The notes beneath the pieces are model-generated. The model searched no databases. It was not told the origin of the DNA and saw nothing but the letters and a program-made list of their open reading frames with translations. DNA of 63,190 nucleotides, the filler included, from Pelomyxa schiedti (lineage: Eukaryota; Protista; Evosea), in the NCBI GenBank assembly GCA_020536535.1. It is 7 parts of 7 records of this genome, joined end to end, with 100 filler letters (N's around TTAATTAATTAA, not from the genome) between each part and the next. Parts side by side here need not be neighbours in the genome. Positions count along the whole stretch, not along the records: positions 1 to 20,037 come from JAHLWZ010001098.1; 6 more parts are not named here. One strand, written 5' to 3'. Positions within the stretch are counted from its first letter, which is position 1. Every line of letters starts with the position of its first letter. Positions 1 through 14,876 of the stretch are shown piece after piece. Made by a program: the position numbers and the translations under genes.

Positions 1-1707
1 CAGAGCGGACGGGTATGCAGGCGCTGTTGGGGCAGAACACCGTGGGTTGGTTCGTCCGAGACATGCTCCGCGTGGCTCCGGTCGACCCCCTCGACGTCGT
101 CAGCCTCCTGGAGGCTCTCGGGGCCGAGGCCGCGCTCGAGTCCCAGCTGCTGGCCCGGCACGTGCGGCTGCCGCGGCACGTGGACTCCCACAGCCCCGCC
201 GCGGACCGCGACCGGCTGGCGGAGGTGCTGGCCCAGTGCGTGTGCAGGGGGTGGAGGCGGGCGGTCCGCTGGGTTGTGCAGGCGGCCCCGTGCCTGCGGC
301 CCAGGGAGCAGCCCGCGGGCCCGCCGGGGATCACGGGCAGGTGGATACTGAGGCAGGTCCTGTCCGCGTGTGCTGGGGCTCAGGACTGGGACGTCCTTAG
401 GGGGCTGATTGTCGGTTCGCGGCTGGAGAGGGCTGACATGGAGTATGGCGGCAATATTCTTTTGGCCTCGGCCCTACGTTATGGCAACGTGGAGGTAGGT
501 TTCGTGTCAAAAAAAAAAAAAATGATGACTATATTTTTTATATGATATACAAATGCTCGAACTCATACTTTTCTCACACTTGCACATCCCAGCTTGCAGA
601 ATGGATGCACAGGCAATTTGGCTTCTCTAGAAGGGAGTTTGTAGAGAGTTCAGAAACTGTCTGCCCTGTGTGGATTTCGTGAATTCCAATACTATATGTC
701 GTGTAACATTGGGCTGACTTTTTACCAAGAGATCCATAGAATGGTTTTTATCCCACAAGTGGCCAGACCCTGTTTTACCTGGAGACAACCTGTGGATTCG
801 CCTGCTCATCAATTCCATCAGGAGCGGTCACTCTTCTGCCGATATTATCAGGATCATCAACAAATGTCCCACAGAGGGTGATTCATCACTCATTGGTGAC
901 TTGATAGTAACTGCAACGGAATGCAGCCGAAGAGATATCTTGGAGCATTTGCTCGAGAGGCTCGTTCATTGGGAGTACAGCGCCACATCCAAGTGGGCCA
1001 CTTTGATATGTGAGAAAAAGTGGTATGACCTGCTTCTTGCTGTTCTTTCAAGGATCGAGCCGAGAGACCCTGAATCTCATCAGTGCGAGATGCAGACGTG
1101 CGTTGAAACCTTTTGTGACGATCACCAGATAGAGATATGGGTGTCGAACTTCCATATTACGGCAAGATACATTGACATCGAGCCGCTAGTACGGAGCATC
1201 ATTAGGAATCGGGGAATTCTGAATCGTCTGCCCAGGTTCGGCGTTCAGAATTCAGATATGAGCCGGTTCTTCTTCCCAGACTTTCAGATGCGTGGCAGGC
1301 AATTGGGCTTTGCTGCCCTTATAGATTTACCTTTTGATGTTGTCAGATACCTGGTGGATATGTGCCAAGTCCCAATGGCTCCCTACCTGATGTGGCTCCC
1401 TCGTGGAACAATGCTTGATAATTGGCGCCTCTATGGTGCCGCCTACACAAGGCTTGATACCCCCGTCTTTGTCGAGAAAGTGATTTGGTACGCGCATGCC
1501 TCACATCACTGTTCCTGCACCTCAATGTCAGTTGCAATGTCTGTGCTACAATGGATACCCCTTGCCAATCTGGCCCAGATTTTGGGGAACGCAGCCGCCG
1601 TGAGAATGAGAGAGCTGCCCGAAAACGAGGTGTGTGAGAGCTGTGTTCAGCTTTGGGCACGGTTCAACGAAGCCAGGTGCGCACCCTCAGCGGGTTCATC
1701 TCTATGA
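1..1707 (+). CDS. Multi-exon hypothetical protein with weak ankyrin-like helical repeats (5' end uncertain)
   Basis: ORFs 15..545 and 901..1707 are linked by short introns (e.g. GTAGGT at ~495 to CCCAG at ~592). Segments such as LASALRYGNVE-LAEWM and ECSRRDILEHLL resemble ankyrin repeats. No firm family assignment. Confidence 0.45.
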
Positions 1708-4837: not shown

Positions 4838-6218
4838 CTATATTATAACTGTGTGTATTTGCACTTGAATTCAGAAGAGAACCCACGGAACCAACACTGT
4901 TAAAGGTTGGATACCAAATGGATTCACATGCCTTTTGCATCAAGTGTATCCCGAAACCTGGATATGCCGACTCCAGGACGTTATATTATGGAAATATAGT
5001 GGAGAATACAACAACAGGTTCCTTTGGAATGATATGGCTGAGAGTCCTACTGGAAATGGAAACTACCACTATTTTCCTATAAGGAATACAAATGGGTACA
5101 AACCTGGTATGGCTTAAATCCTCACATTTTGCCCAGGTTTGGTCTTTACTCTTGAGCCACTTGTCAGACATTGTATGTGCATGATTATCATCATTTCTGC
5201 ACTGGCATGTGCACTGTGATTTCCGTCCATATCAGTTCACGAACCTGTCCTGCCAGCCGCGGTTCAGAAGTGCCACCTGTTGAATTAACGAGAATGCACG
5301 AACCGAATCGTTTAACAACACGCAGAGACCACTGTGTGGTATTGACCGATACCATTCATGACGGCGTCGTCACTTTAATTTAATTGTCTATCGTGTTCTC
5401 CCAACTTGGTTAGTGATCAGAGTTCTCTGCTACAGGTATGAAAGGGGATGGCTGAAACGGTGGCTGCTTGACTCCAACCAACAAGTGCCTGTGTGATTGT
5501 TAGAAAACACCGAGTTGTGCAGGAAAGAAGACCTTCTCAATCAAATGTTTTCAGTGGGAGGGTTTTTATGTTGTTGTGATTGCAGGTGGCCAAACCCGCA
5601 AGCTAAACACTGGACACTGTTGGGCTCCATCAGCTCGCTGCACTGACGGCTTAGCGGTGCCTCGTTGCGGAGCCCACAGCCCTGCGTTGGGCAAGGCAGC
5701 AGAGGATGCCTGGCCCCATTGGCGTTTTCATCAGAAAAGTGATAGTGCCAGCCAAAAAAGGCCGTGGTGGCTACAGAACCCTCACGGGAGGCAGGTTCCC
5801 CGATGCACTGGATTGGGCTCTGGCGGAATGGAGGTGACGAGCGCTTTTCCCTGGCACCTGGACTTTGTTTCCCAATATCTCTTTGAGTCCGGGTGCATAA
5901 TTTGCCCGATAAGGCAATTTCTATTTTTTGTGACAACAGCAAGGACTTGGGCGCCCCAACAGGGGCCCTTGGGGGTTACTTGACAACCCCCATGAACACA
6001 GCCACACACCCACGGGCAAGCAAGTCCTGTTGAGGAGATCTCGAAAAAAAAATTCCAAAAAAAATAAATTTCTCAGTCTTTTTTAACGGTAAAATTATGC
6101 ACCCGGACTCAAAGAGATATGTTTGATCGATCGAATCCGAGTGTTGCATCTCCCCCTCAGACGATCACCCTCTGCACACCTTGAAATTTTTTGTTGTTTT
6201 CACGAAACCAAACAAACG

Positions 6219-7655
6219 ATGGCATCGGGCAACAACAAGGCGCAGTCGCTGCAGCGCAAGCAGTGGCGGGGAGCGGCGGTGTCGGTGGTCGCGATGGTCA
6301 GCGCCGGCGACCAGTTCGCGGCGCTGATGGCGTCGTCCCTGCCGCGGTGCGGGGCGCTCAGCCCGGCCGGCCCCGTGTGCCTCGTCGCGCCGCTGGCCCG
6401 CCACCTCTGGTGCGAGTGGGTCGCGGGGCCGGGCTGCGCCGCGGTGGCGTCGGTCACCCTGGCGCTCGTGAGCAAGGGGGGAGGCGCCTCCCGGGGGCAG
6501 CGGTCGGTGGCGTTCGGCGTGTCCCGCACCACGCTGGGCGTCGCGACGCGGGGCGGGCGCGTCGTCGGCACCACGGGCGACACGGCGAGCTGGGCGGCGC
6601 CCGGCGTCTCGCTGCAGAGGACCTGGGGCATGTTTGGCGCGATTTCGCTGCGGCTGCAGAGGCGAGGCTGGGGCACGGCCACCGCCACGACCACGGGGAC
6701 GGGGACGGAGCGTGACGGGGTCCTGCGTATCAGCAGGGAGGGTGTTGTGTGCGACGCCGTGAATTCCAAGTGGTGGGTCACGTGCGAGAGGGAGGTGGTC
6801 AGAGATAAGAGAGGAGGAACTGTAAGTGCAAGCAACTGCGTGACACTGGCGGTAACTGGAATTCACTGCTACACCACAGCCACGGCCACAACCATAACCA
6901 CAACCACTAGTTCCTGTGAGACGGCGGGACTGACTGTACCGTGCACTGCTGGGATTGATGTTCCGTGGGTGACTTGGGAGGCAAATACCAGAATGAGGAT
7001 GTTCATGAACAACATCTTTCCAGACGAGGCACTATTTGCCCTCAGCTGCGTTTCCACCCAGGAGGTTTCCCTCACGCTGTTTGATGTCCACCAGGCACGC
7101 GAATCAAGGAGAATTTCAGTGCTGGCGCGTACGTCAATGGGGACAAGAGGAATGCAGGATGGTGCTTGTTCTGCTTTGGTGGCTGTGCCATCGTTCCAAG
7201 GCGTTCCTGTTCATGCGTTGGTGTTGAGGAGGAGGAAGACTGACGGCTCTATTGTCTTCATCTTGAAGCCATTATTGGGCACAGTATACCAGGTTGAGGC
7301 CGCAACAGGTCTGACAACGGTGTTGTCGGTGAGGTGCTCAGACCTGTCACAGCTGAGTGACACCATGTTCTGCATTGGGAGGGCCTATGGCTGCGAGAAG
7401 TCCTACGAACTGTGGGACTGCCACAACGTGGAGCAACCAGTGAGGTGCTTCCAAAGCGGTGACAACTTCGACCAGGTAATTGCAGGCTGCGGATTCCTGT
7501 TCGCAGTGAGCGAGAGGGACAGGAAGATACACGTGATTGACGCGTCGTCAGGGCTGGCTGCCATGATCACCCTCGATGTGCTGTTTGCCTCCACGTTTTA
7601 CATCAACCAGCAGTCATCTCTCTTCGTCTCATGCTCACTCTTTGAGGGGTGGTGA
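6219..7655 (+). CDS. Intronless hypothetical protein of a lineage-expanded orphan family (DQFxAL..RCG..EWV..GVSxTLG motif, Thr-rich inserts)
   Basis: Long uninterrupted ORF with ATG at 6219. It shares motifs with the ORFs at 59625-60669(-) and 60812-61283(+). Confidence 0.75.
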   Translation: MASGNNKAQSLQRKQWRGAAVSVVAMVSAGDQFAALMASSLPRCGALSPAGPVCLVAPLARHLWCEWVAGPGCAAVASVTLALVSKGGGASRGQRSVAFGVSRTTLGVATRGGRVVGTTGDTASWAAPGVSLQRTWGMFGAISLRLQRRGWGTATATTTGTGTERDGVLRISREGVVCDAVNSKWWVTCEREVVRDKRGGTVSASNCVTLAVTGIHCYTTATATTITTTTSSCETAGLTVPCTAGIDVPWVTWEANTRMRMFMNNIFPDEALFALSCVSTQEVSLTLFDVHQARESRRISVLARTSMGTRGMQDGACSALVAVPSFQGVPVHALVLRRRKTDGSIVFILKPLLGTVYQVEAATGLTTVLSVRCSDLSQLSDTMFCIGRAYGCEKSYELWDCHNVEQPVRCFQSGDNFDQVIAGCGFLFAVSERDRKIHVIDASSGLAAMITLDVLFASTFYINQQSSLFVSCSLFEGW

Positions 7656-8540: not shown

Positions 8541-11500
8541 TCAAGGCCTCTCAGAGAACATCCTCTTGATCTTGGCCTCCATCAAGAGACTGCGCTTGAG
8601 CAGTGCCGCCCTGTACTCCACAGCCACCCAAACGTCAAACTTGTCGGCTGAGGCTGCAGCAGTGGCGCCATCAGCATACACTCCTCCCGCCTGCCACTTG
8701 TGCGTGGGGTATTTCAGGCCACCCTTGTCGTTCCTCTCTCCCTGTTTGTTGGGTGCCGTTAGGAGTGGAGGAAAAGGGAGGCGGATGGATGGCGGCAGTA
8801 CCTTGAGCCAGATCGGGCCATGCTCTTCGCCCGCAAGGAGGGCAAGGTGGCCATCGGGGGCGCCTTCGTTCTTCCAGACCATGCCTCCATCGCCACTGCC
8901 ATTGTAAAGGGCGAGGTGCACTTCGCCAAAGGTGCTGGTTGCGTCCAAATCGCTGTGGTCATGCAGGCCACAGTCCACACCAAGGCCGGCCGCCCAGAAC
9001 TGAATGCTGGCCACGGGGGTCCCGCCCACGTTAATGTGGATGTAGCGCGAGTTGAAGAAGCGCTCGAACGGGGGGAATGGCTTCCAGGGCATCACTATTG
9101 CGTTCCCGTTGGGCAGAACCCACTGCAGTGTTGAGGTATCTGTGACTTCTTTGGCTGCCCCATAAAGCTTCGTGAACAGCATGAACAGTGCTCCTTCTGG
9201 TCCAGCCTGAACCAATGGATCTTTTGTTTTTATGGGCGCAATGAGTGAAGCGTTTTTCTGAGTGAGTACATACTGCGCAATATTGCGGACCGCTTTTCGC
9301 GGGGATTGGCCAAGATTGGGATGAATGGGTTAGAAAGGCCACCTGCGAGAATCTTGACGTAGCTCTCGAAACCGTCCACCAGCCCTGGCATGAAGGCATG
9401 TGCATAAGGAGGCAGCAACATGATGCGCATGCAGTGTGTCTCTGTACCCTGTGCGTGGAGGATAAGCGGCTCTGAAATGTACCTTGCCCCCTCTGCTGAT
9501 GGCTCGATTTGGGCAAACGAGATAGAGAGCTCGCATGCATCTGCAGATGAGACTTGCTTCTGGTATGCAACTTCCTTCCACCTCTGACAAGTTCGGAACG
9601 GCATTCGGGTGAGAGGCGACGCATCGAGGGATGGGGTGAGAGTATTCGAGAAAACTGCCACTCGGCTGTTGCATGCTTCAAAGTAGCCAGCCACAGAGTA
9701 TCCAATCGTGGCAATGTCACTGAGATTTTATGTTATAAAAAAAAAGAGGAAAGGATGTAAAAATGGAGAAGAGATAGAACAGTAGAGATGGGGAATAGAG
9801 TTGGGGAGATGAGTGAAGTTGACACTTACATTGAACCGTTGCCGTCCCAGTCACCCACCGCAATCCTGGCGGCACTGTCTTGCGTGAGCCGGTACTTGAT
9901 GAACTTGACGTCGTCTGGAGAGGACATGCTGCACTTGTACATGAAAACACCCTCAGCAGGAGCAGGACCCCTCAGTGCGACAAGCAATTCTTCTTCCCCA
10001 TCTTTGTTGATGTCTGCAGTGATCAAGTGATGCGCCGGGCCCTCCTCTTTCTTGTTGGGCACGCCGTACACATCCACGATATGCTGTGACCATCCCCCTG
10101 ACGGTCTCTGCACATACACAGTCAGCACATACCCATGGAACGGTTCTATCGCCGCAATACACTCCTTGCCACTGTGCCTGAATGTGGTCACGTTGCCACA
10201 TCCATTGAATACCTTGCCGTGGACCTCTCCTTTGGTGATTGACTCCATCTGCCAAACAAGTCAAAAAAAGAAGGGGACTGACTGAAGAGTTACATTAAAG
10301 ACACCAGCAGCAGGATCATAAACAAACTTTGTCAAACCCTCCTGTGACGCAATGATGAAGGAGTCAAGCCCTGTTGCTGGGTTCTTCATCAGACATACTT
10401 CATGAATCACATGGAATGTCGAACCCTCTGAATGAAGGAGGAAAAAGGGGAGGAGACACTACGTCAGAGGAAGGGGAGGCCATAAAGTGCACATACTCGT
10501 GTCAATTCTGGTGGCCTCCCAGCTTGTTGCGTTTATCACATCTGTTGGTGCCGTGAACAAGCACAGAGGGATAGGAGCTCCAAAATCTCCAACTGCTCCC
10601 ACGATCGGCAAGCCCAGAACCTTGTTGGGATTTAGAACAGGCTTTGGGGTAAGGAATTGAAGAACACACCTGAATACGTGTTGCATCAGTGAAATGACCG
10701 ACACGAAGCCGGTGCATGGACATTGACTGGCCAATGTAGTGCTGCTTCCATGGCACTGTCCCTCCAGTCCCTGGATTCTCGAGCCACGCGATCTTGCCAC
10801 CATTTGGATCAGGTTCCTTCATGTTTTTGCCATATTCGTAGCATGTGATCAAGTCTGGGTAGCCATTGCCTGTGATGTCCCACGTGTCTGTGGAAACTGG
10901 TCCAATCAACTTGAAAATTGTTGTTTTGGGAGGGGGAGGGGAATTTTGGTCAGCAACAATGGCGGGGTAGGAGAGCAAAGGAAAAAAACACAAGCATCCA
11001 TTCACATTACCTCTTGAATCACTTGGCCAGGTGACCACTTTCCACCACCAAGGTTGTCATAGACGGTGATCTGGCCCTTCCCAAGGCCGTAAGCAATGAG
11101 GTCAGACCTGCCGGTCCTGTGAAGGTCTGCAGTGTGGATCCAGTACCCATCATTAAGCTTATCGGCAAGGACCGTGCGAACCATGCGGGGACACAGGTTG
11201 AGCTCGAGGGTCACCACAACGTACTTGCCCTTGGTCACAGGTTCGTTGGGCTGACCAAACCTCACCAGGGTCACACGGCAGGTGTCATCCAGGAAGACCG
11301 CAGGGGATGTCTTGCTGGCGAGGAATTCAGTGAGGCTGGGAACGACCGGCAGCGGGAACCTCGGCTCGTTTCCAATGCGCACAAAGACGGTGTACTTCTT
11401 CCATATGTCGTTGTGGTTTGCGTCATGGTGGAAGGCAACACACAACCACTTGGTGTGGTCAGCGATGGTGGGTTCTGGTACATCAGGGCCGTTGAGGCAG

Positions 11501-14500
11501 TCGAGCTCCACCTTGCGAGAGACGAGGACGTTGCCCTCCTCGTGCACTCTGTTCTGAACACATATGTGCACGTACTGGTCCTTATAGCCACGCCGTTCGT
11601 CAAAGACTCCACGGCAGGGAGAGGACACCCTCGACTCGCCGTCGTCGAGGTAGAGCTGGTATTTGGACCGGCCCTTTGCGGAACAAGGGGCACCCGGCAT
11701 TACATTGAGTGTCACTGGTTGCATCTTGCCATCCCGTGTCCTCTGTCCAACGAACTGCTCCAGCTCGACCGTGGGTATCACAGTTCCAGCACGGAGGAAT
11801 ATCGGCAGCAGGTAAGGAATGTGCCGCGCACAGTTGGATGAGTCCCCATCTCCCTGGGCCCACAGGGAGGCGTCGTAGTTGCACAGCTGCCTGCCGCCCT
11901 CCATCGGCCTTGCCATACTGCCGTAAGGTGGGTTGCGAACTCCTTTGCTCAGCCACTCCCTCGCTCTGGTTTCAGGGTCGAGAGGTGCGAAGTTGTTGGC
12001 GAACTGGTACCACTTGCTTCCGGCCGGCAGGTAGACGTTCCTCTTTACATTTCCATTGACACCCTTGTTGAGGATGGGGGCCACGAGCATGTCAGAGCCA
12101 ACAAGGTATTCGTTGCTGCAGTACTCAAGCATCTCGAAGTGGAGCGAGGGGTCCCTGAGTCCATCTTGGAGGAAGAGGGGCTTGGAGATTGGAATCCCGT
12201 TCCGGTTGCTGCCGAACATGCCGTCGTAGAGCAGCTGAATGAACCTATAGCGCAGCTCAATGTAAAACTTGCACACAGGTAACACGTTGGTGTAGAGAAG
12301 CCTCTCGTTGGGTGCCACTTCATTTGCGCGAGCTTCAAATGCATACACTTCTTGGAAGAGCTTCCCTGGCTTGTTGCCGTGTGGTGGCCAAGGGGTCATG
12401 GCGCTGCCGTCATAGTGGCAGCGGTACCAAGGCAAGAAAGCGGCAGCCAAGTGCCACCTGATGAATAGCTCTGGGTCAATCCAAGATTGGTTGTCATCGG
12501 CCCTGGCGAACCCACCAATGTCGGCGCCAGACATGAACTGCCCACTCAGCCCGAGGGACAGACACTGGACGAGGTTGATCTTCATGAAGTCCCACGTACT
12601 GGAGTTGTCACCGGTCCACAGGGCTCCGAACCGGTGCATCCCAGAGCAACCTCCCCTTCCAATTATGAACGGCCTCTTGTTGGCCAACAACTCGTGCTTG
12701 TCCCACCCATTGAAGGTGGACCTCAGCAGATTCAGAGCGAACATGTTCCTCATGCAAATCGCCGGTATCTTGGACAAGGGCTTGCTTTTTGGGGGTGTTC
12801 CGCTACTCGACGACTCCCCGGGAGTCTTGTAAGTGTTGTCGGTGAGCATCAGGTCGAGCGGGAAGGAGCTCCAATCGTCTATCTCCCTGTCCATATCTGG
12901 CGTAACCATGTCCTGCCAGACGTAGCTGAGTCCCGCCCTCAGCAGCGTTTCGTATGCCTTCTGCCACCAGCTGTAGGCGTCAGGGTGACCCAGGTCTGGG
13001 TAGAGTCCCCTTGGGCACTCTGGGGAGTAAGCCACTTTGCCTATGAACGGAGAGTATTCCGTAGATGCTGGAGGGTTTCCCTGCAGATTTCCGGCCATCT
13101 CATTCCCCACAAAGACCCTCTTGGTCGTGTCTTGCAAGGCTGCAATTGCAGCAGGGTGATTTTGCGCGATGTAGGGAGTGATGTTAGTGGAGCTCTTCAG
13201 ACCCATCTTGAGGAGGTCCTGGAAGACCCCGTCGAACCTTTCGTTGATCGTGAAGGTCTGAAGCTCGTGCTGCACGTCAATGTCGATGTTGAAGCTATCA
13301 ATGGGTATCCCAGAATCCCGGAACTTCTTTGCACTGTCGAGCACTTCTCCCTTAGAAGTCCATCCAAACTTTCCCTGGTGATAGCCAAGGACCCACTTGG
13401 GGAACACCCTCCCAGCACCTTCCAACTTGCAGTACAGCGAAGTAATGTCATACGGGTGCCTGCTCTGCACCATGATGTAATAGCTGAATCGTGACACTAA
13501 TGTCCCTATGGCGATCTCGGTTGACTTGGCGGGGCCAAGGTCCACAAAACTCTTGATTTGTAGGTTAGTCTGGGTTTGTGTTTGAGGATGGTGCATGTGC
13601 GCTTCTTATCAGTTTATTTAAGTGTAGGAGTGTGATATGGGCTCTTTCATACTGGCGCAACAGAATCCAAGTAAACGCCAACAAGAGGCCTATCAGGGAT
13701 ACACTCGAACCAGAAGGGGTTGCTGTGGTACAGTGGCTCCCTCGTGTCGGTCGGTCCCACTCCATACACGGCACGATACAAGAAGTTGTCGTAGTTGGTG
13801 AACTGAAGGTGTTGCGAGTTCATGCACAAGTTTGCGCCTCCCTTCTCCCCAAATCCTGCGCAACTGTCATCATCAACATAAAATTGGGGGTTTGAGCGAA
13901 CCAAGGTACTGACAGAATGAAAGTTTCTTCCTGTGCCAGTACGTCGAGAACTCCTTTCTCAGGGTCCCTTCGTTTTTGTACTCTGCCACCTCTGACGTCT
14001 TGAACAGAATGTCTGACGACACCATCGTCCACTACAGAAAAAAGCGCATCGTCAGCCCCACGTTCATTACTATAGTTATAGGAAGGCATTACCTCTGGAT
14101 TCTGGAACGTGGAGCAGAGCGGACCGGCGGACTTCTTGTTGGCGAACACGGTGATGGTGACGGGGTTGCCCCTCGTGACGACCACCTTGAGCGTCGGGCC
14201 ATACACGTTCTCTGTGACGATCTCGACTGGCTCGTAGGTGTCCTCGGGAACTTTCGTTTGAACTCCCGTTTCCCTGATTTGAGGTTCGCCTTCCTGCAAA
14301 AAAAGTTAAAGGAATTTCTGATGGTGTGGAGGGTTGTCGTGTGTAACGTGCGTGTGGCCGGCGCATCACGTGTGTGTGTTTTGGGGGGCGTAGTTGCGTT
14401 TAGTTACCCATTTCAAACCATGGTGGATGATGGCGCACAGGTCAGCAAAGGTGTCTCCCACGATGCTCCTCGTGTTGGAGTACCTCGTCATTCCATCCTC

Positions 14501-14876
14501 GACTGAAGGAATTTCGCCCTGTTTTGTGTGATGTCAGCAAAGGAACGAACGAACGAAGAGGGAGGAGGTGAAGAGAGGGAATGAAACAACAAGATAAAAT
14601 GGGAGGTGAGGAACAAACTGTCTTTGGGTAAATTCGGACGGCCACGATGAGGGAGTCAGGGATGAGGACGTCGACGACGTGTTGGTCGGTTGTCAGCCTC
14701 ACCCCAGCTTCTCTTACTGCTGGATGTCCACTTTTCTGTGGGTCTCCGATATTCAAGACCTCGGTATGCACCACGTTCGCCACGGGAACGCTGTACGTGC
14801 CTGCCTCTGCCTGGAAGAACCGCTCGAGGGGTCCCTCCCCATTGCTTACGTCCTTTGACAACAACCTCTTGAACAT
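8541..14876 (-). CDS. Fusion protein: GH31 alpha-1,4-glucan lyase-like domain + aldos-2-ulose dehydratase/isomerase (AUDH) beta-propeller and cupin domains; about 12 exons, about 1,800 aa
   Basis: Phase-consistent exons (approx.): 14876-14619, 14518-14408, 14293-14093, 14031-13910, 13863-13652, 13551-11011, 10909-10670, 10620-10497, 10427-10294, 10248-9830, 9719-9274, 9220-8541. GH31 motifs: GFGEKGG, EPLYHSNPF, GYHQGKFGW, YVWQDMVTP, LWTGDNSS, GADIGGF, WYRCHY. AUDH motifs: DGYWI, DITGNGYPDL, GGKIAWLENPG, MHRLRVGHFT, FHVIHE, EPFHG, LVALRGP, SAARIAVGD, DIATIGYSVAGYF, and cupin CGLHDHS..FGEVH. Confidence 0.88.

Follow-up and report, generated by a model that had tools for sequence, protein, structure and literature searches.

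A gene on the minus strand of Pelomyxa schiedti DNA (positions 14876-8541 of the window, by which we mean the whole 63,190-nt stretch that was analysed) was found to join a glycoside hydrolase family 31 (GH31) part to an aldos-2-ulose dehydratase (AUDH) part. The fused gene is nuclear, expressed and archamoebal, and its 13 exons comprise 5424 nt plus the stop codon, coding for 1808 aa. We consider it probable (roughly 0.65) that the product is a single cytosolic lyase-type GH31-AUDH polypeptide of 1808 aa, which would take glycogen through anhydrofructose to ascopyrone M/microthecin, and that it was welded from a co-functioning set. In fungi and red algae the anhydrofructose pathway is known, with glucan lyase and AUDH as separate proteins. 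The fusion appears to be undescribed, while the two-enzyme pathway itself is already known. An earlier reading of the sequence alone had supposed that there was no prior description; this stood for the literature, in which our search found no published description of a GH31-AUDH fusion, but an orthologue was already present, unremarked, in the public EukProt proteome of Mastigamoeba balamuthi, where it is annotated as 'putative glycoside hydrolase family 31 protein'.

Gene model and expression

Twelve spliceosomal introns interrupt the gene, every one of them flanked by GT..AG, and 11 of the 12 were confirmed from spliced contigs of two runs. No stop interrupts the reading frame between exon 2 and the terminal one at 8541-8543, and the joined coding sequence gives 1808 open codons. 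Database searches were run exon by exon, and the joined sequence was used only for frame, length, motif positions and dN/dS. The features are as follows.

8541..14876, minus: whole coding region, ATG 14876-14874 and stop 8543-8541; cDNA splice joints, phase and open-frame check, collinear tblastn to the Mastigamoeba orthologue P0122
14619..14876, minus: exon 1a, aa 1-86; begins at the first ATG of the open segment, donor GT 14618 and acceptor AG conserved in paralogue C373
14408..14518, minus: exon 1b, aa 87-123; acceptor AG 14520-14519 inferred, donor read-backed, joint 14292/14407 (cut +1)
14093..14293, minus: exon 2, aa 124-190, GH31 N-terminal region; cDNA joints, open frame
13902..14031, minus: exon 3, aa 191-233; cDNA joints, open frame
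13653..13855, minus: exon 4, aa 234-301, end of the GH31 N-terminal beta-sandwich; Gal_mutarotas_2 E 6e-5, joints, open frame
11011..13551, minus: exon 5, aa 302-1148, GH31 TIM barrel, GH31 C-terminal domains, junction and first AUDH blade; open 2541 nt, domain matches, joints
13171..13188, minus: TNITPY, aa 423-428; Asn424 aligned to N459 of Gracilariopsis glucan lyase (TNITCF), 2x2h alignment
12898..12921, minus: VWQDMVTP, aa 512-519; Asp515 the catalytic nucleophile (glucan lyase D553) by alignment
12598..12618, minus: WTGDNSS, aa 613-619; Asp616 the general acid (glucan lyase D665) by alignment
11167..11208, minus: fusion junction ..LELNLCPR/MVRTVL..; AUDH part from codon 11184-11182 (aa 1091)
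10670..10909, minus: exon 6, aa 1149-1228, propeller blades, with AUDH signature MHRLRVGHFT at 10688-10717; Pfam AUDH_beta_propeller E 7e-15, 4a7k E 1.3e-15, joints
10497..10620, minus: exon 7, aa 1229-1269, propeller; joints, open frame, conserved residues
10294..10427, minus: exon 8, aa 1270-1314, propeller; Pfam, joints, open frame
9830..10248, minus: exon 9, aa 1315-1453, last propeller blades, with EPFHG and HH..ADI.KDGxEE; Pfam, joints, conserved motifs
9274..9719, minus: exon 10, aa 1454-1602, divergent first half of the cupin region; joints, alignment to the Mastigamoeba orthologue
8802..9220, minus: exon 11, aa 1603-1742, AUDH cupin, with metal-ligand motif GLHDHSD..FGEVH at 8916-8969 and EEHGPIW; Pfam AUDH_Cupin E 2e-22, 4a7k alignment, joints
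8742..8801, minus: intron, 60 nt, in frame; joint 8740/8801 (cut +1), spliced out in two runs (X1 and X4)
8541..8741, minus: exon 12, aa 1743-1808 and stop, end of the cupin, with YPTHKWQAG and FDVWVAVEY; 4a7k alignment, joints, open frame

The sequence-only reading had placed six phase-consistent AUDH exons behind the large exon. These were indeed phase-consistent and completed the propeller and cupin, but the number is seven, because transcripts remove the 60-nt in-frame intron at 8742-8801. The borders of the large exon were confirmed. The first exon is predicted to hold an additional intron (14618-14519). Read backing of the splice joints reaches 14500; this intron and exon 1a lie beyond that stretch, and the intron was placed by homology and by GT/AG sites conserved in the paralogue. 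The start of exon 1a is predicted to be without an obvious signal peptide, and a PTS1 peroxisomal targeting signal is absent from the C-terminus of the 1808-aa protein. A Pfam search of ten ORFs neighbouring the fused gene in the window gave no match.

The large exon had been described as running without a stop or intron from GH31 into the first AUDH blade, and so it does: its 2541 nt are open, with Pfam matches on both sides, and lead from GH31 into ..LELNLCPR-MVRTVLADKLNDGYW.., the first blade of FG-GAP/AUDH type. The junction contains zero stops and zero introns, and there is practically no linker between the two parts. One spliced cDNA contig of 3419 nt, assembled from short reads, covers 12368-8541 including the junction at 11184, and is unbroken from 12368 to 11011; the single transcript proposed for 11300-10900 was thus seen as a spliced contig crossing that region. 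Being built from short reads, the contig proves neither a single full-length mRNA nor the lack of an internal start.

Two separate proteins might also arise from the one gene, through an internal promoter, initiation at Met1091 or proteolysis at the junction, and then the pathway would hold but channelling would fail. The Met (aa 1091) sitting exactly at the junction would suit this, as would an unfused GH31 in a relative and the cDNA depth, which is 419 over the 3' 3.4 kb against 16 at the 5' end (~25x). However, the deep contig begins at 12368, within the GH31 barrel and 1.2 kb upstream of the junction, and oligo-dT libraries of single cells are expected to show a 3' bias. Nor is the Met at the junction an ancestral start, since it aligns with the Phe of a P-x-F motif in Mastigamoeba, which has no Met there, and in stand-alone propellers. 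Moreover, three genes (window, C373 and Mastigamoeba) have retained the reading frame through the junction. We therefore regard separate proteins as quite improbable and continue with the single polypeptide. The idea that a retained start codon marks a recent fusion was rejected, with the Met aligned to the conserved P-x-F Phe and the fusion common to Mastigamoeba.

The junction in a paralogue and in Mastigamoeba

A second intact fused paralogue was found in the same genome (C373:25782-32057), with 91.6% amino acid identity and, introns included, 89% nucleotide identity to the window gene. All splice sites are retained in it and the indels are multiples of three. The dN/dS between the two genes was 0.23 in the GH31 half and 0.16 in the AUDH half; judged by these ratios, the fused paralogue is under purifying selection. 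That C373 is a mere haplotig was rejected from a comparison covering the 5' flank and the gene, in which similarity reaches back to 207 nt before the ATG and the next 3.6 kb of C373 upstream cannot be aligned to the window.

The Mastigamoeba balamuthi orthologue (EukProt EP00727_P013967, here P0122) is collinear with window positions 14831-8610 at ~47% identity by tblastn, and the alignment is uninterrupted across the junction. Its gene model of 2598 aa includes an extra N-terminal part of ~800 aa, which contains a zf-C3HC domain and is without equivalent in the window; this may reflect a merged gene model. Contigs encoding P0122 and P0004 were sought and none was found. The fusion is older than the split between Pelomyxa and Mastigamoeba. 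On contig L001 of a related eukaryote the GH31 gene is unfused, with no AUDH within 10 kb, and the fusion is therefore not obligatory.

These two genes also bear on whether the fusion could be an artefact, that is a misassembly, bacterial contamination or a merged gene model. The P. schiedti assembly was made from amplified single cells carrying bacterial endosymbionts (PMC8887013), and the closest non-amoebal relatives of the GH31 half are bacterial, as would be expected of such an artefact. However, the gene has twelve GT..AG introns, eleven of them confirmed by spliced contigs in two runs, and unspliced genomic contigs of another run cover the junction without indels, including around 11190, where the earlier reading had named a stop or misassembly as a possible objection. 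Since the same junction recurs in the second intact paralogue and in the collinear orthologue, which comes from a separate genome project, the fusion is not an artefact, an explanation to which we attach hardly any weight. The earlier view that the junction is no product of splicing prediction was upheld by the 3419-nt cDNA contig, the paralogue under purifying selection and the Mastigamoeba gene.

Lyase and AUDH signatures

Residues 1-1090 are predicted to form a complete lyase-type GH31 enzyme. Pfam matches, expected by the earlier reading on both halves, were found exon by exon for the GH31 domains, AUDH_beta_propeller and AUDH_Cupin. GH31 membership was given by PF01055 (Glyco_hydro_31_2nd; 198.8 bits, cut-off 23.5, E 1.9e-58) and PF21365 (Glyco_hydro_31_3rd; 43.4 bits, cut-off 24.4, E 5e-11), and the N-terminal Gal_mutarotas_2 match was weak (23.8 bits, below the cut-off of 27). 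Both the nucleophile Asp515 and the general acid Asp616 are present, aligned with D553 and D665 of glucan lyase (GLase; chain numbering offset +11, derived from the alignment to 2x2h), and an Asn is found at GLase position 459, where TNITPY aligns with TNITCF. This N459 aids the nucleophile acting as base, and is replaced by Ile in hydrolases (review, PMC12441222). The nucleophile motif of the fused genes is WQDMVTP, which is lyase-type, the hydrolase form being W[IN]DM[ND]EP, as found in at least three further GH31 genes of this genome. TNITP was present in 120 of 120 bacterial homologues, and the lyase-type Asn together with WQDM was invariant in the clade, comprising these homologues and the amoebozoan members. 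At the level of such signatures, namely the Asn at the N459 position and WQDM in common with 2x2h, the earlier glucan-lyase call agrees with our results, and the sequence supports a predicted identity of the GH31 half as alpha-1,4-glucan lyase. In an unrooted LG+G4 tree of this GH31 clade alone, the four eukaryote rows formed one clade on a long branch.

Among solved structures 2x2h was the top single-unit match (E 4e-35 to the exon), with 312 bits to the clade profile against at most 253. On that profile the hydrolase MGAM, which has two units, equals the lyase in score, its value being the sum of three matched stretches across two catalytic units. This result is relevant to the possibility that a genuine fusion has, as its GH31 half, an ordinary alpha-glucosidase or transglycosidase, with the AUDH-like half working on another keto-sugar or as a carbohydrate-binding propeller, and no anhydrofructose pathway. 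The identity of only ~30% to the sole solved lyase and the MGAM score are in keeping with it, our literature search found no characterised member of the bacterial and amoebal clade, and the bacterial members are named 'alpha-glucosidase' in their source annotations. Against it stand the composite nature of the MGAM score, the invariant lyase-type Asn and WQDM across the 120 bacterial homologues and the amoebozoans, and the hydrolase motifs that the same genome retains in its other GH31 genes. We consider an ordinary glucosidase unlikely, also in view of the gene neighbourhoods described below, and favour the lyase-type enzyme.

Residues 1091-1808 are predicted to be a complete, lectin-less AUDH with a seven-blade propeller and a cupin. 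Of 66 residues invariant in the family this half retains 60, among them the H-x-H..E-x-H metal ligands of the cupin, and the motifs EHGP.W and YP.H.W are also retained. The propeller profile PF22301 matched exon 6 with 55.7 bits (cut-off 27) and continued with weaker matches in exons 8 and 9; over the whole model of the orthologue P0122 it gave 122 bits. Downstream exon pieces matched the AUDH structure 4a7k with E 1.3e-15 and 2.5e-10. The AUDH bicupin profile PF18637 gave 80.4 bits, spanning just profile positions 166-307 of 308. Exon 10 alone gave no Pfam match and aligns only to the Mastigamoeba orthologue. An AF2 model, made for the AUDH half of that orthologue rather than for the window protein, found 4a7k with E 5e-45 (runner-up 1.8e-9) and has low pLDDT in the first cupin half. 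A C-terminal ricin-type lectin domain is absent, as the protein ends 55 residues past the cupin YP.H.W; the lectin is not family-defining, because it is also absent from the fungal homologue P0140 (Calocera) and from P0147 and P0132. The propeller tree had no resolved branching at its base. Fungal AUDH acts on glucosone as well (giving cortalcerone), and the true substrate of the AUDH half could therefore differ.

Bacterial neighbourhoods and comparison with known systems

An AUDH-related cupin gene adjoins the lyase-like GH31 gene in 52 of 80 bacterial loci, and an AUDH-type propeller gene is also adjacent in 22 of the 80. The bacterial cupin is remotely similar to AUDH (hhalign 96.7%, E 4e-10). 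The gene order GH31-propeller-cupin was seen in Paenibacillus, Marinilabiliaceae and Vibrio, and in four loci (L016, L085, L089, L090) the genes follow one another as the domains do in the fusion. At many loci the cupin is present and the propeller absent, and in Clostridium cellulovorans the GH31 gene is without AUDH parts, so the linkage is frequent, not universal. Around the bacterial module no other conserved neighbours (transporter, reductase, regulator) were found, and the literature search found no paper describing the three-gene module. The neighbourhoods support the view that bacterial clusters tie together the same three parts as the fusion. If the lyase product is the AUDH substrate, the GH31 gene would be expected to be repeatedly linked or fused to both AUDH parts, as is observed, and this counts against an ordinary glucosidase.

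In the lyase-AUDH pathway that we propose, the GH31 half would attack the non-reducing ends of glycogen or another alpha-1,4-glucan. Asp515 would form the glycosyl-enzyme and then, aided by Asn424, abstract H-2, and 1,5-anhydro-D-fructose would leave in place of glucose. The tethered propeller site of AUDH would dehydrate 1,5-anhydro-D-fructose to ascopyrone M, which the cupin metal site would isomerise, giving microthecin or an enolone related to it. The fusion mirrors the GH31/propeller/cupin module common in bacteria, and most likely a co-functioning gene set was therefore welded into one eukaryotic transcription unit.

Consecutive pathway enzymes are commonly fused, and the finding does not overturn a principle. 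It indicates that two pathway steps can be hard-wired in one polypeptide of ~200 kDa, and that the anhydrofructose pathway is probably present in anaerobic Amoebozoa. From the conserved neighbourhoods the pathway is probably present in many bacteria too, especially cyanobacteria, with the GH31 member now annotated 'alpha-glucosidase'. The fusion provides independent genomic evidence that an uncharacterised GH31 clade makes an AUDH substrate, so that a prediction open to testing takes the place of hundreds of vague annotations. A single gene of this kind may also serve as a compact means of making antimicrobial or antioxidant enolones from starch or glycogen via anhydrofructose. More tentatively, and with the odds rather against it, the archamoebal fusion could be a 'Rosetta stone' for an unrecognised but widespread prokaryotic anhydrofructose pathway (lyase-type GH31 plus split AUDH, in cyanobacteria and at least 10 other phyla), and could, in Pelomyxa, which is anoxic and rich in glycogen, channel glycogen to microthecin-type enolones that control the dense bacterial and methanogen endosymbionts or prey, rather than to energy.

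The known lyase closest to the GH31 half is 2x2h (Gracilariopsis lemaneiformis isozyme 1, EC 4.2.2.13), with the same N-terminal sandwich, TIM barrel and C-terminal domains and with TNIT (N459), VWQDMxxP (D553) and W.GDNS (D665) in common. Identity to it is only ~30%; the clade of the window protein is bacterial and archamoebal, neither red-algal nor fungal, and the window protein carries a 718-aa AUDH at the C-terminus of GH31. The GH31 alpha-glucosidases share the family, the fold, the nucleophile Asp and the acid Asp with the fused gene, but have W[IN]DM[ND]EP and Ile (PMC12441222) where the fused genes have WQDMVTP and Asn.

AUDH of Phanerochaete chrysosporium (EC 4.2.1.110, 4a7k) has, like the window protein, a seven-blade VCBS-type propeller followed by a cupin, and its motifs MHRL..GHFT, EPFHG, HH..AD.D.DG.DE, H-x-H..E-x-H, EHGP.W and YP.H.W are kept. 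Identity is ~28-30%, with a divergent first cupin half; the crystallised enzyme has a C-terminal lectin that the window protein and some basidiomycete homologues lack, and it stands alone, whereas the window AUDH is fused behind GH31. Mastigamoeba P0122 has the same GH31-propeller-cupin order as the window gene and differs from it in having no Met at the junction. The bacterial module, as in Oscillatoria princeps (L010/L074) and Paenibacillus gyeongsangnamensis (L016), shares its three parts with the fusion: a lyase-like GH31 that is 33-44% identical to the window GH31 with the same TNITP and WQDM, an AUDH-type propeller (~430 aa) up to 46% identical to that of Mastigamoeba, and an AUDH-related cupin (~245 aa). 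Unlike in the fused protein, these are encoded by separate genes, and the cupin is a single short domain.

Gene model and transcripts

The fusion was found to lie in a single intron-rich gene on the minus strand, at window 14876-8541. Homology searches were run exon by exon, and the joined CDS was used solely for counts of frame, length and substitution rate. An open frame of 864 aa (13596-11002) held two GH31 parts, the TIM barrel (PF01055, E 1.9e-58) and then the C-terminal domain (PF21365, E 5e-11), and its last ~60 residues, from MVRTVLADKLNDGYW on, were an FG-GAP/VCBS-type propeller blade. The open pieces downstream matched the solved aldos-2-ulose dehydratase (AUDH) 4a7k (E 1.3e-15 and 2.5e-10) and the Pfam families AUDH_beta_propeller (7e-15) and AUDH_Cupin (2e-22). 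The GH31-to-AUDH exon that the sequence-only reading had placed at 13551-11011 was thus correct, with domain matches on both sides of the junction, and both sets of Pfam families that it had expected were recovered exon by exon.

Public sequencing runs were compared, as contigs, with window 8541-14500. Run X3 gave unspliced genomic contigs, and runs X4 and X1 gave spliced ones. X1 is recorded as single-cell RNA-seq; X4, whose kind is unrecorded, is cDNA, because its contigs are spliced and agree with X1. Eleven introns were read from the joints, all of them GT..AG on the minus strand.

Introns of the fused gene
14618-14519, minus strand, intron 1a/1b, inferred from sequence, homology and GT/AG sites conserved in the paralogue
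14294-14407, minus strand, intron, GT..AG, read from contig joints
14032-14092, minus strand, intron, GT..AG, read from contig joints
13856-13901, minus strand, intron, GT..AG, read from contig joints
13552-13652, minus strand, intron, GT..AG, read from contig joints
10910-11010, minus strand, intron, GT..AG, read from contig joints
10621-10669, minus strand, intron, GT..AG, read from contig joints
10428-10496, minus strand, intron, GT..AG, read from contig joints
10249-10293, minus strand, intron, GT..AG, read from contig joints
9720-9829, minus strand, intron, GT..AG, read from contig joints
9221-9273, minus strand, intron, GT..AG, read from contig joints
8742-8801, minus strand, in-frame intron of 60 nt, GT..AG, read from contig joints

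With the contig-derived borders, exon 2 onward read as one open frame of 1685 codons down to the stop, and the full model, including the inferred first-exon intron, had 13 exons and 1808 aa. The spliced contigs bore out the exact borders of exon 13551-11011. Further AUDH exons had also been predicted after it, and these are real, but they number seven and not six, because the 60-nt in-frame intron at 8742-8801 had been overlooked. Record 14 of X4 (3419 nt) ran unbroken from 12368 to 11011, a stretch that takes in 1.2 kb of the GH31 barrel as well as the junction and the first propeller blade, and was then spliced across all AUDH exons to 8541 and ~78 nt further. A single spliced contig therefore spans 11184 within the interval proposed for a one-transcript check (11300-10900), although contigs alone do not establish one full-length mRNA and the transcript evidence is contig-level. 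The spliced contig bears out the earlier claim that the junction is no splicing-prediction artefact. The genomic contigs had zero indels near it.

Scattered transitions separated the cDNA contigs from the assembly, with 12 in X1 across exon 9 (9830-10248) and 9 in X4 across exon 5 (11011-12368). They look like allelic or between-cell variation, since the cDNA contigs were much nearer to the window copy than to the 89%-identical paralogue. The change 11161 A>G, beside the junction, falls at a third codon position.

No signal peptide was evident in the fused protein and PTS1 was absent, so a cytosolic site beside glycogen is likely. None of ten neighbouring ORFs in the window had a Pfam family. 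On the plus strand, a 510-aa open frame without a Pfam match (6123-7652) lay in a GC-rich stretch (0.61-0.65 vs ~0.45 around). GC was 71% over window 1-500, at the start of the contig.

Catalytic signatures and the junction

Against solved structures, the top match of the large exon was the Gracilariopsis alpha-1,4-glucan lyase 2x2h (E 4e-35). A clade profile gave 2x2h 312 bits in one stretch and every other single catalytic unit at most 253 bits. Asp515 (VWQDMVTP) aligned with the lyase nucleophile D553 (VWQDMTVP), Asp616 (WTGDNSS) with the lyase acid D665, and Asn424 (TNITPY) with N459 (TNITCF). N459 hydrogen-bonds the nucleophile, enabling proton abstraction, and is Ile in GH31 glycosidases (PMC12441222). 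In solved hydrolases the nucleophile motif is WNDMNEP. Other GH31 loci of Pelomyxa, at least ten in number and heavily intron-split (contigs C813, C470, C160, C130, C811, C607, C846, C455 and others), served as an internal control: the ones read (at least three genes) had WIDMDEP or WNDMNEP, and the two fused genes had WQDMVTP. TNITP and WQDM occurred together in all 120 closest bacterial homologues (33-46% identity over ~1000 aa), most of which are annotated as alpha-glucosidase. At signature level only, these results support the GH31 half as a glucan lyase.

For the AUDH half, the window exons were aligned as fragments to six full-length AUDH-type proteins (the basidiomycetes Calocera and Lentinula, the Mastigamoeba orthologue and three other sequences). 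The window kept 60 of the 66 invariant columns, including the motifs MHRL..GHFT, EPFHG, HH..AD.D.DG.DE, cupin H-x-H..E-x-H, EHGP.W and YP.H.W; the first half of the cupin region was divergent. An apparent His-to-Arg change was rejected, since it arose from the overlaying of two fragments. For the Mastigamoeba AUDH half, an AlphaFold model (mean pLDDT 72.7, propeller near 90) matched 4a7k with a Foldseek E of 5e-45, as compared to 1.8e-9 for the second-best match. The lectin domain at the C-terminus of the crystallised AUDH is absent from the Pelomyxa protein, as it is from several fungal homologues.

An ENA metagenome contig with eukaryotic neighbours (L001, 248 kb) carries an unfused, intron-containing GH31 gene at 9410-12310 (product P0001, 50% identity), followed by an ELO-family gene; no AUDH was found within 10 kb of it. 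As P0001 stops at Pelomyxa ..VVVTLE, this alignment indicates that the fusion has kept the GH31 part right up to its natural C-terminus. On the other side, the AUDH part starts no more than ~10 residues from where stand-alone propellers naturally begin. The Met at the Pelomyxa junction was considered as a relic start codon and rejected, as it aligns with the Phe of a conserved P-x-F (Mastigamoeba PLFEQ; bacteria PYFEQ, PKFNR). In an unrooted GH31 tree P0001 fell inside the eukaryote clade, with weak support (85), and the L001 lineage may have lost the fusion secondarily.

Conservation in archamoebae and the bacterial module

Pelomyxa schiedti is an anaerobic archamoeba, and its genome has a second fused copy (C373:25782-32057) with 89% DNA identity across the gene. 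The two copies begin to align 207 nt before the ATG, and farther upstream the C373 DNA is unrelated. This paralogue retains each of the 13 exons and every splice site, its indels are all multiples of three, and its product is intact (1795 aa, 91.6% aa identity). Between the copies, dN/dS was 0.23 in the GH31 half and 0.16 in the AUDH half. A further AUDH propeller fragment lies on a 742-nt Pelomyxa contig (C3684).

A cupin-exon search of 1.84 billion representative proteins returned one GH31 plus AUDH protein, EukProt EP00727_P013967 of Mastigamoeba balamuthi, annotated as a putative GH31 protein and nothing more. It is collinear with window 14831-8610 at ~47% identity, in a single unbroken alignment over the junction. 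By these comparisons the fusion is older than the Pelomyxa-Mastigamoeba split and has been kept by selection. The intact paralogue and the fused orthologue rule out assembly, contamination and gene-model artefacts. The Mastigamoeba model also has an N-terminal extension (residues 1-800) with a zf-C3HC domain; these ~800 aa had no counterpart ahead of the window gene's ATG, so the model possibly merges two genes.

Among 80 bacterial loci around lyase-like GH31 genes, the GH31 gene was adjoined by a ~245-aa gene in 52, and in 22 a ~430-aa AUDH-type propeller gene was also beside it (for example L010:5496-11090 and L016:2959-7294). Profile comparison with hhalign identified the ~245-aa family, barely detected by Pfam alone, as a homologue of AUDH's metal-binding cupin (probability 96.7%, E 4e-10). 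The genes run propeller-cupin-GH31 in most cyanobacteria. In Paenibacillus, two Marinilabiliaceae and Vibrio penaeicida they run GH31-propeller-cupin, as the domains of the fusion do, and the Mastigamoeba propeller was nearest to that of Paenibacillus (46%). No other conserved neighbours were found across the 80 loci. Besides cyanobacteria, at least ten phyla had lyase-signature GH31 genes, and one GH31 homologue lay on a Methanosarcina MAG contig (L030). The three parts thus occur as one protein in archamoebae and as neighbouring genes in at least ten bacterial phyla, which lends independent support to a putative product-substrate relation between the GH31 and AUDH parts. The taxonomic distribution, with the GH31 tree unrooted, makes it plausible that the amoebal gene came from bacteria.

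Proposed pathway and relation to known systems

A full GH31 and a full AUDH share a single open reading frame that is spliced, expressed and conserved, and the catalytic signatures of both are intact. From knowledge of the families, the GH31 half would act on glycogen or starch by elimination and release 1,5-anhydro-D-fructose, which would be dehydrated to ascopyrone M at the propeller site; ascopyrone M would then be isomerised to microthecin at the cupin site. Substrate channelling is speculative, as is a role in antimicrobial control of prey or endosymbionts or in a phosphate-independent catabolic route.

In a literature search, no paper was found that connects glucan lyase or anhydrofructose with an AUDH fusion, with Amoebozoa or with the bacterial clusters, and none that describes the bacterial module. 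The Pelomyxa and Mastigamoeba genome papers leave the fused gene unmentioned, and the Pelomyxa consortium paper speaks of GHs in general terms, as hydrolases that digest polysaccharides. As far as seen, the architecture is public as an unremarked predicted protein and is undescribed. The fusion is confirmed as an observation, and its interpretation as a putative lyase-AUDH enzyme is supported. Both enzymes and the pathway are known; the fused architecture, its lineage and the bacterial gene-cluster context are new. The finding is relevant to carbohydrate enzymology and protist metabolism and brings no new principle.

The AUDH-type cupin alone is also fused to other sugar or carboxylate enzymes (P0123, P0134, P0141, P0187, P0191). 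It is joined to phosphomannose isomerase in Omnitrophota, with or without transaldolase, to phosphoglycerate kinase in some proteins, and in Mastigamoeba to a carboxylate-reductase-like AMP-binding and NAD_binding_4 protein. In P0167 (1387 aa, from a 4.4-kb Logan contig) the AUDH propeller and cupin are complete and stand behind a GMC-oxidoreductase C-terminal domain, an arrangement that looks like a second fusion of an upstream enzyme with AUDH. In fungi, pyranose 2-oxidase forms glucosone, which AUDH converts to cortalcerone, and the apparent fusion in P0167 would parallel this route.
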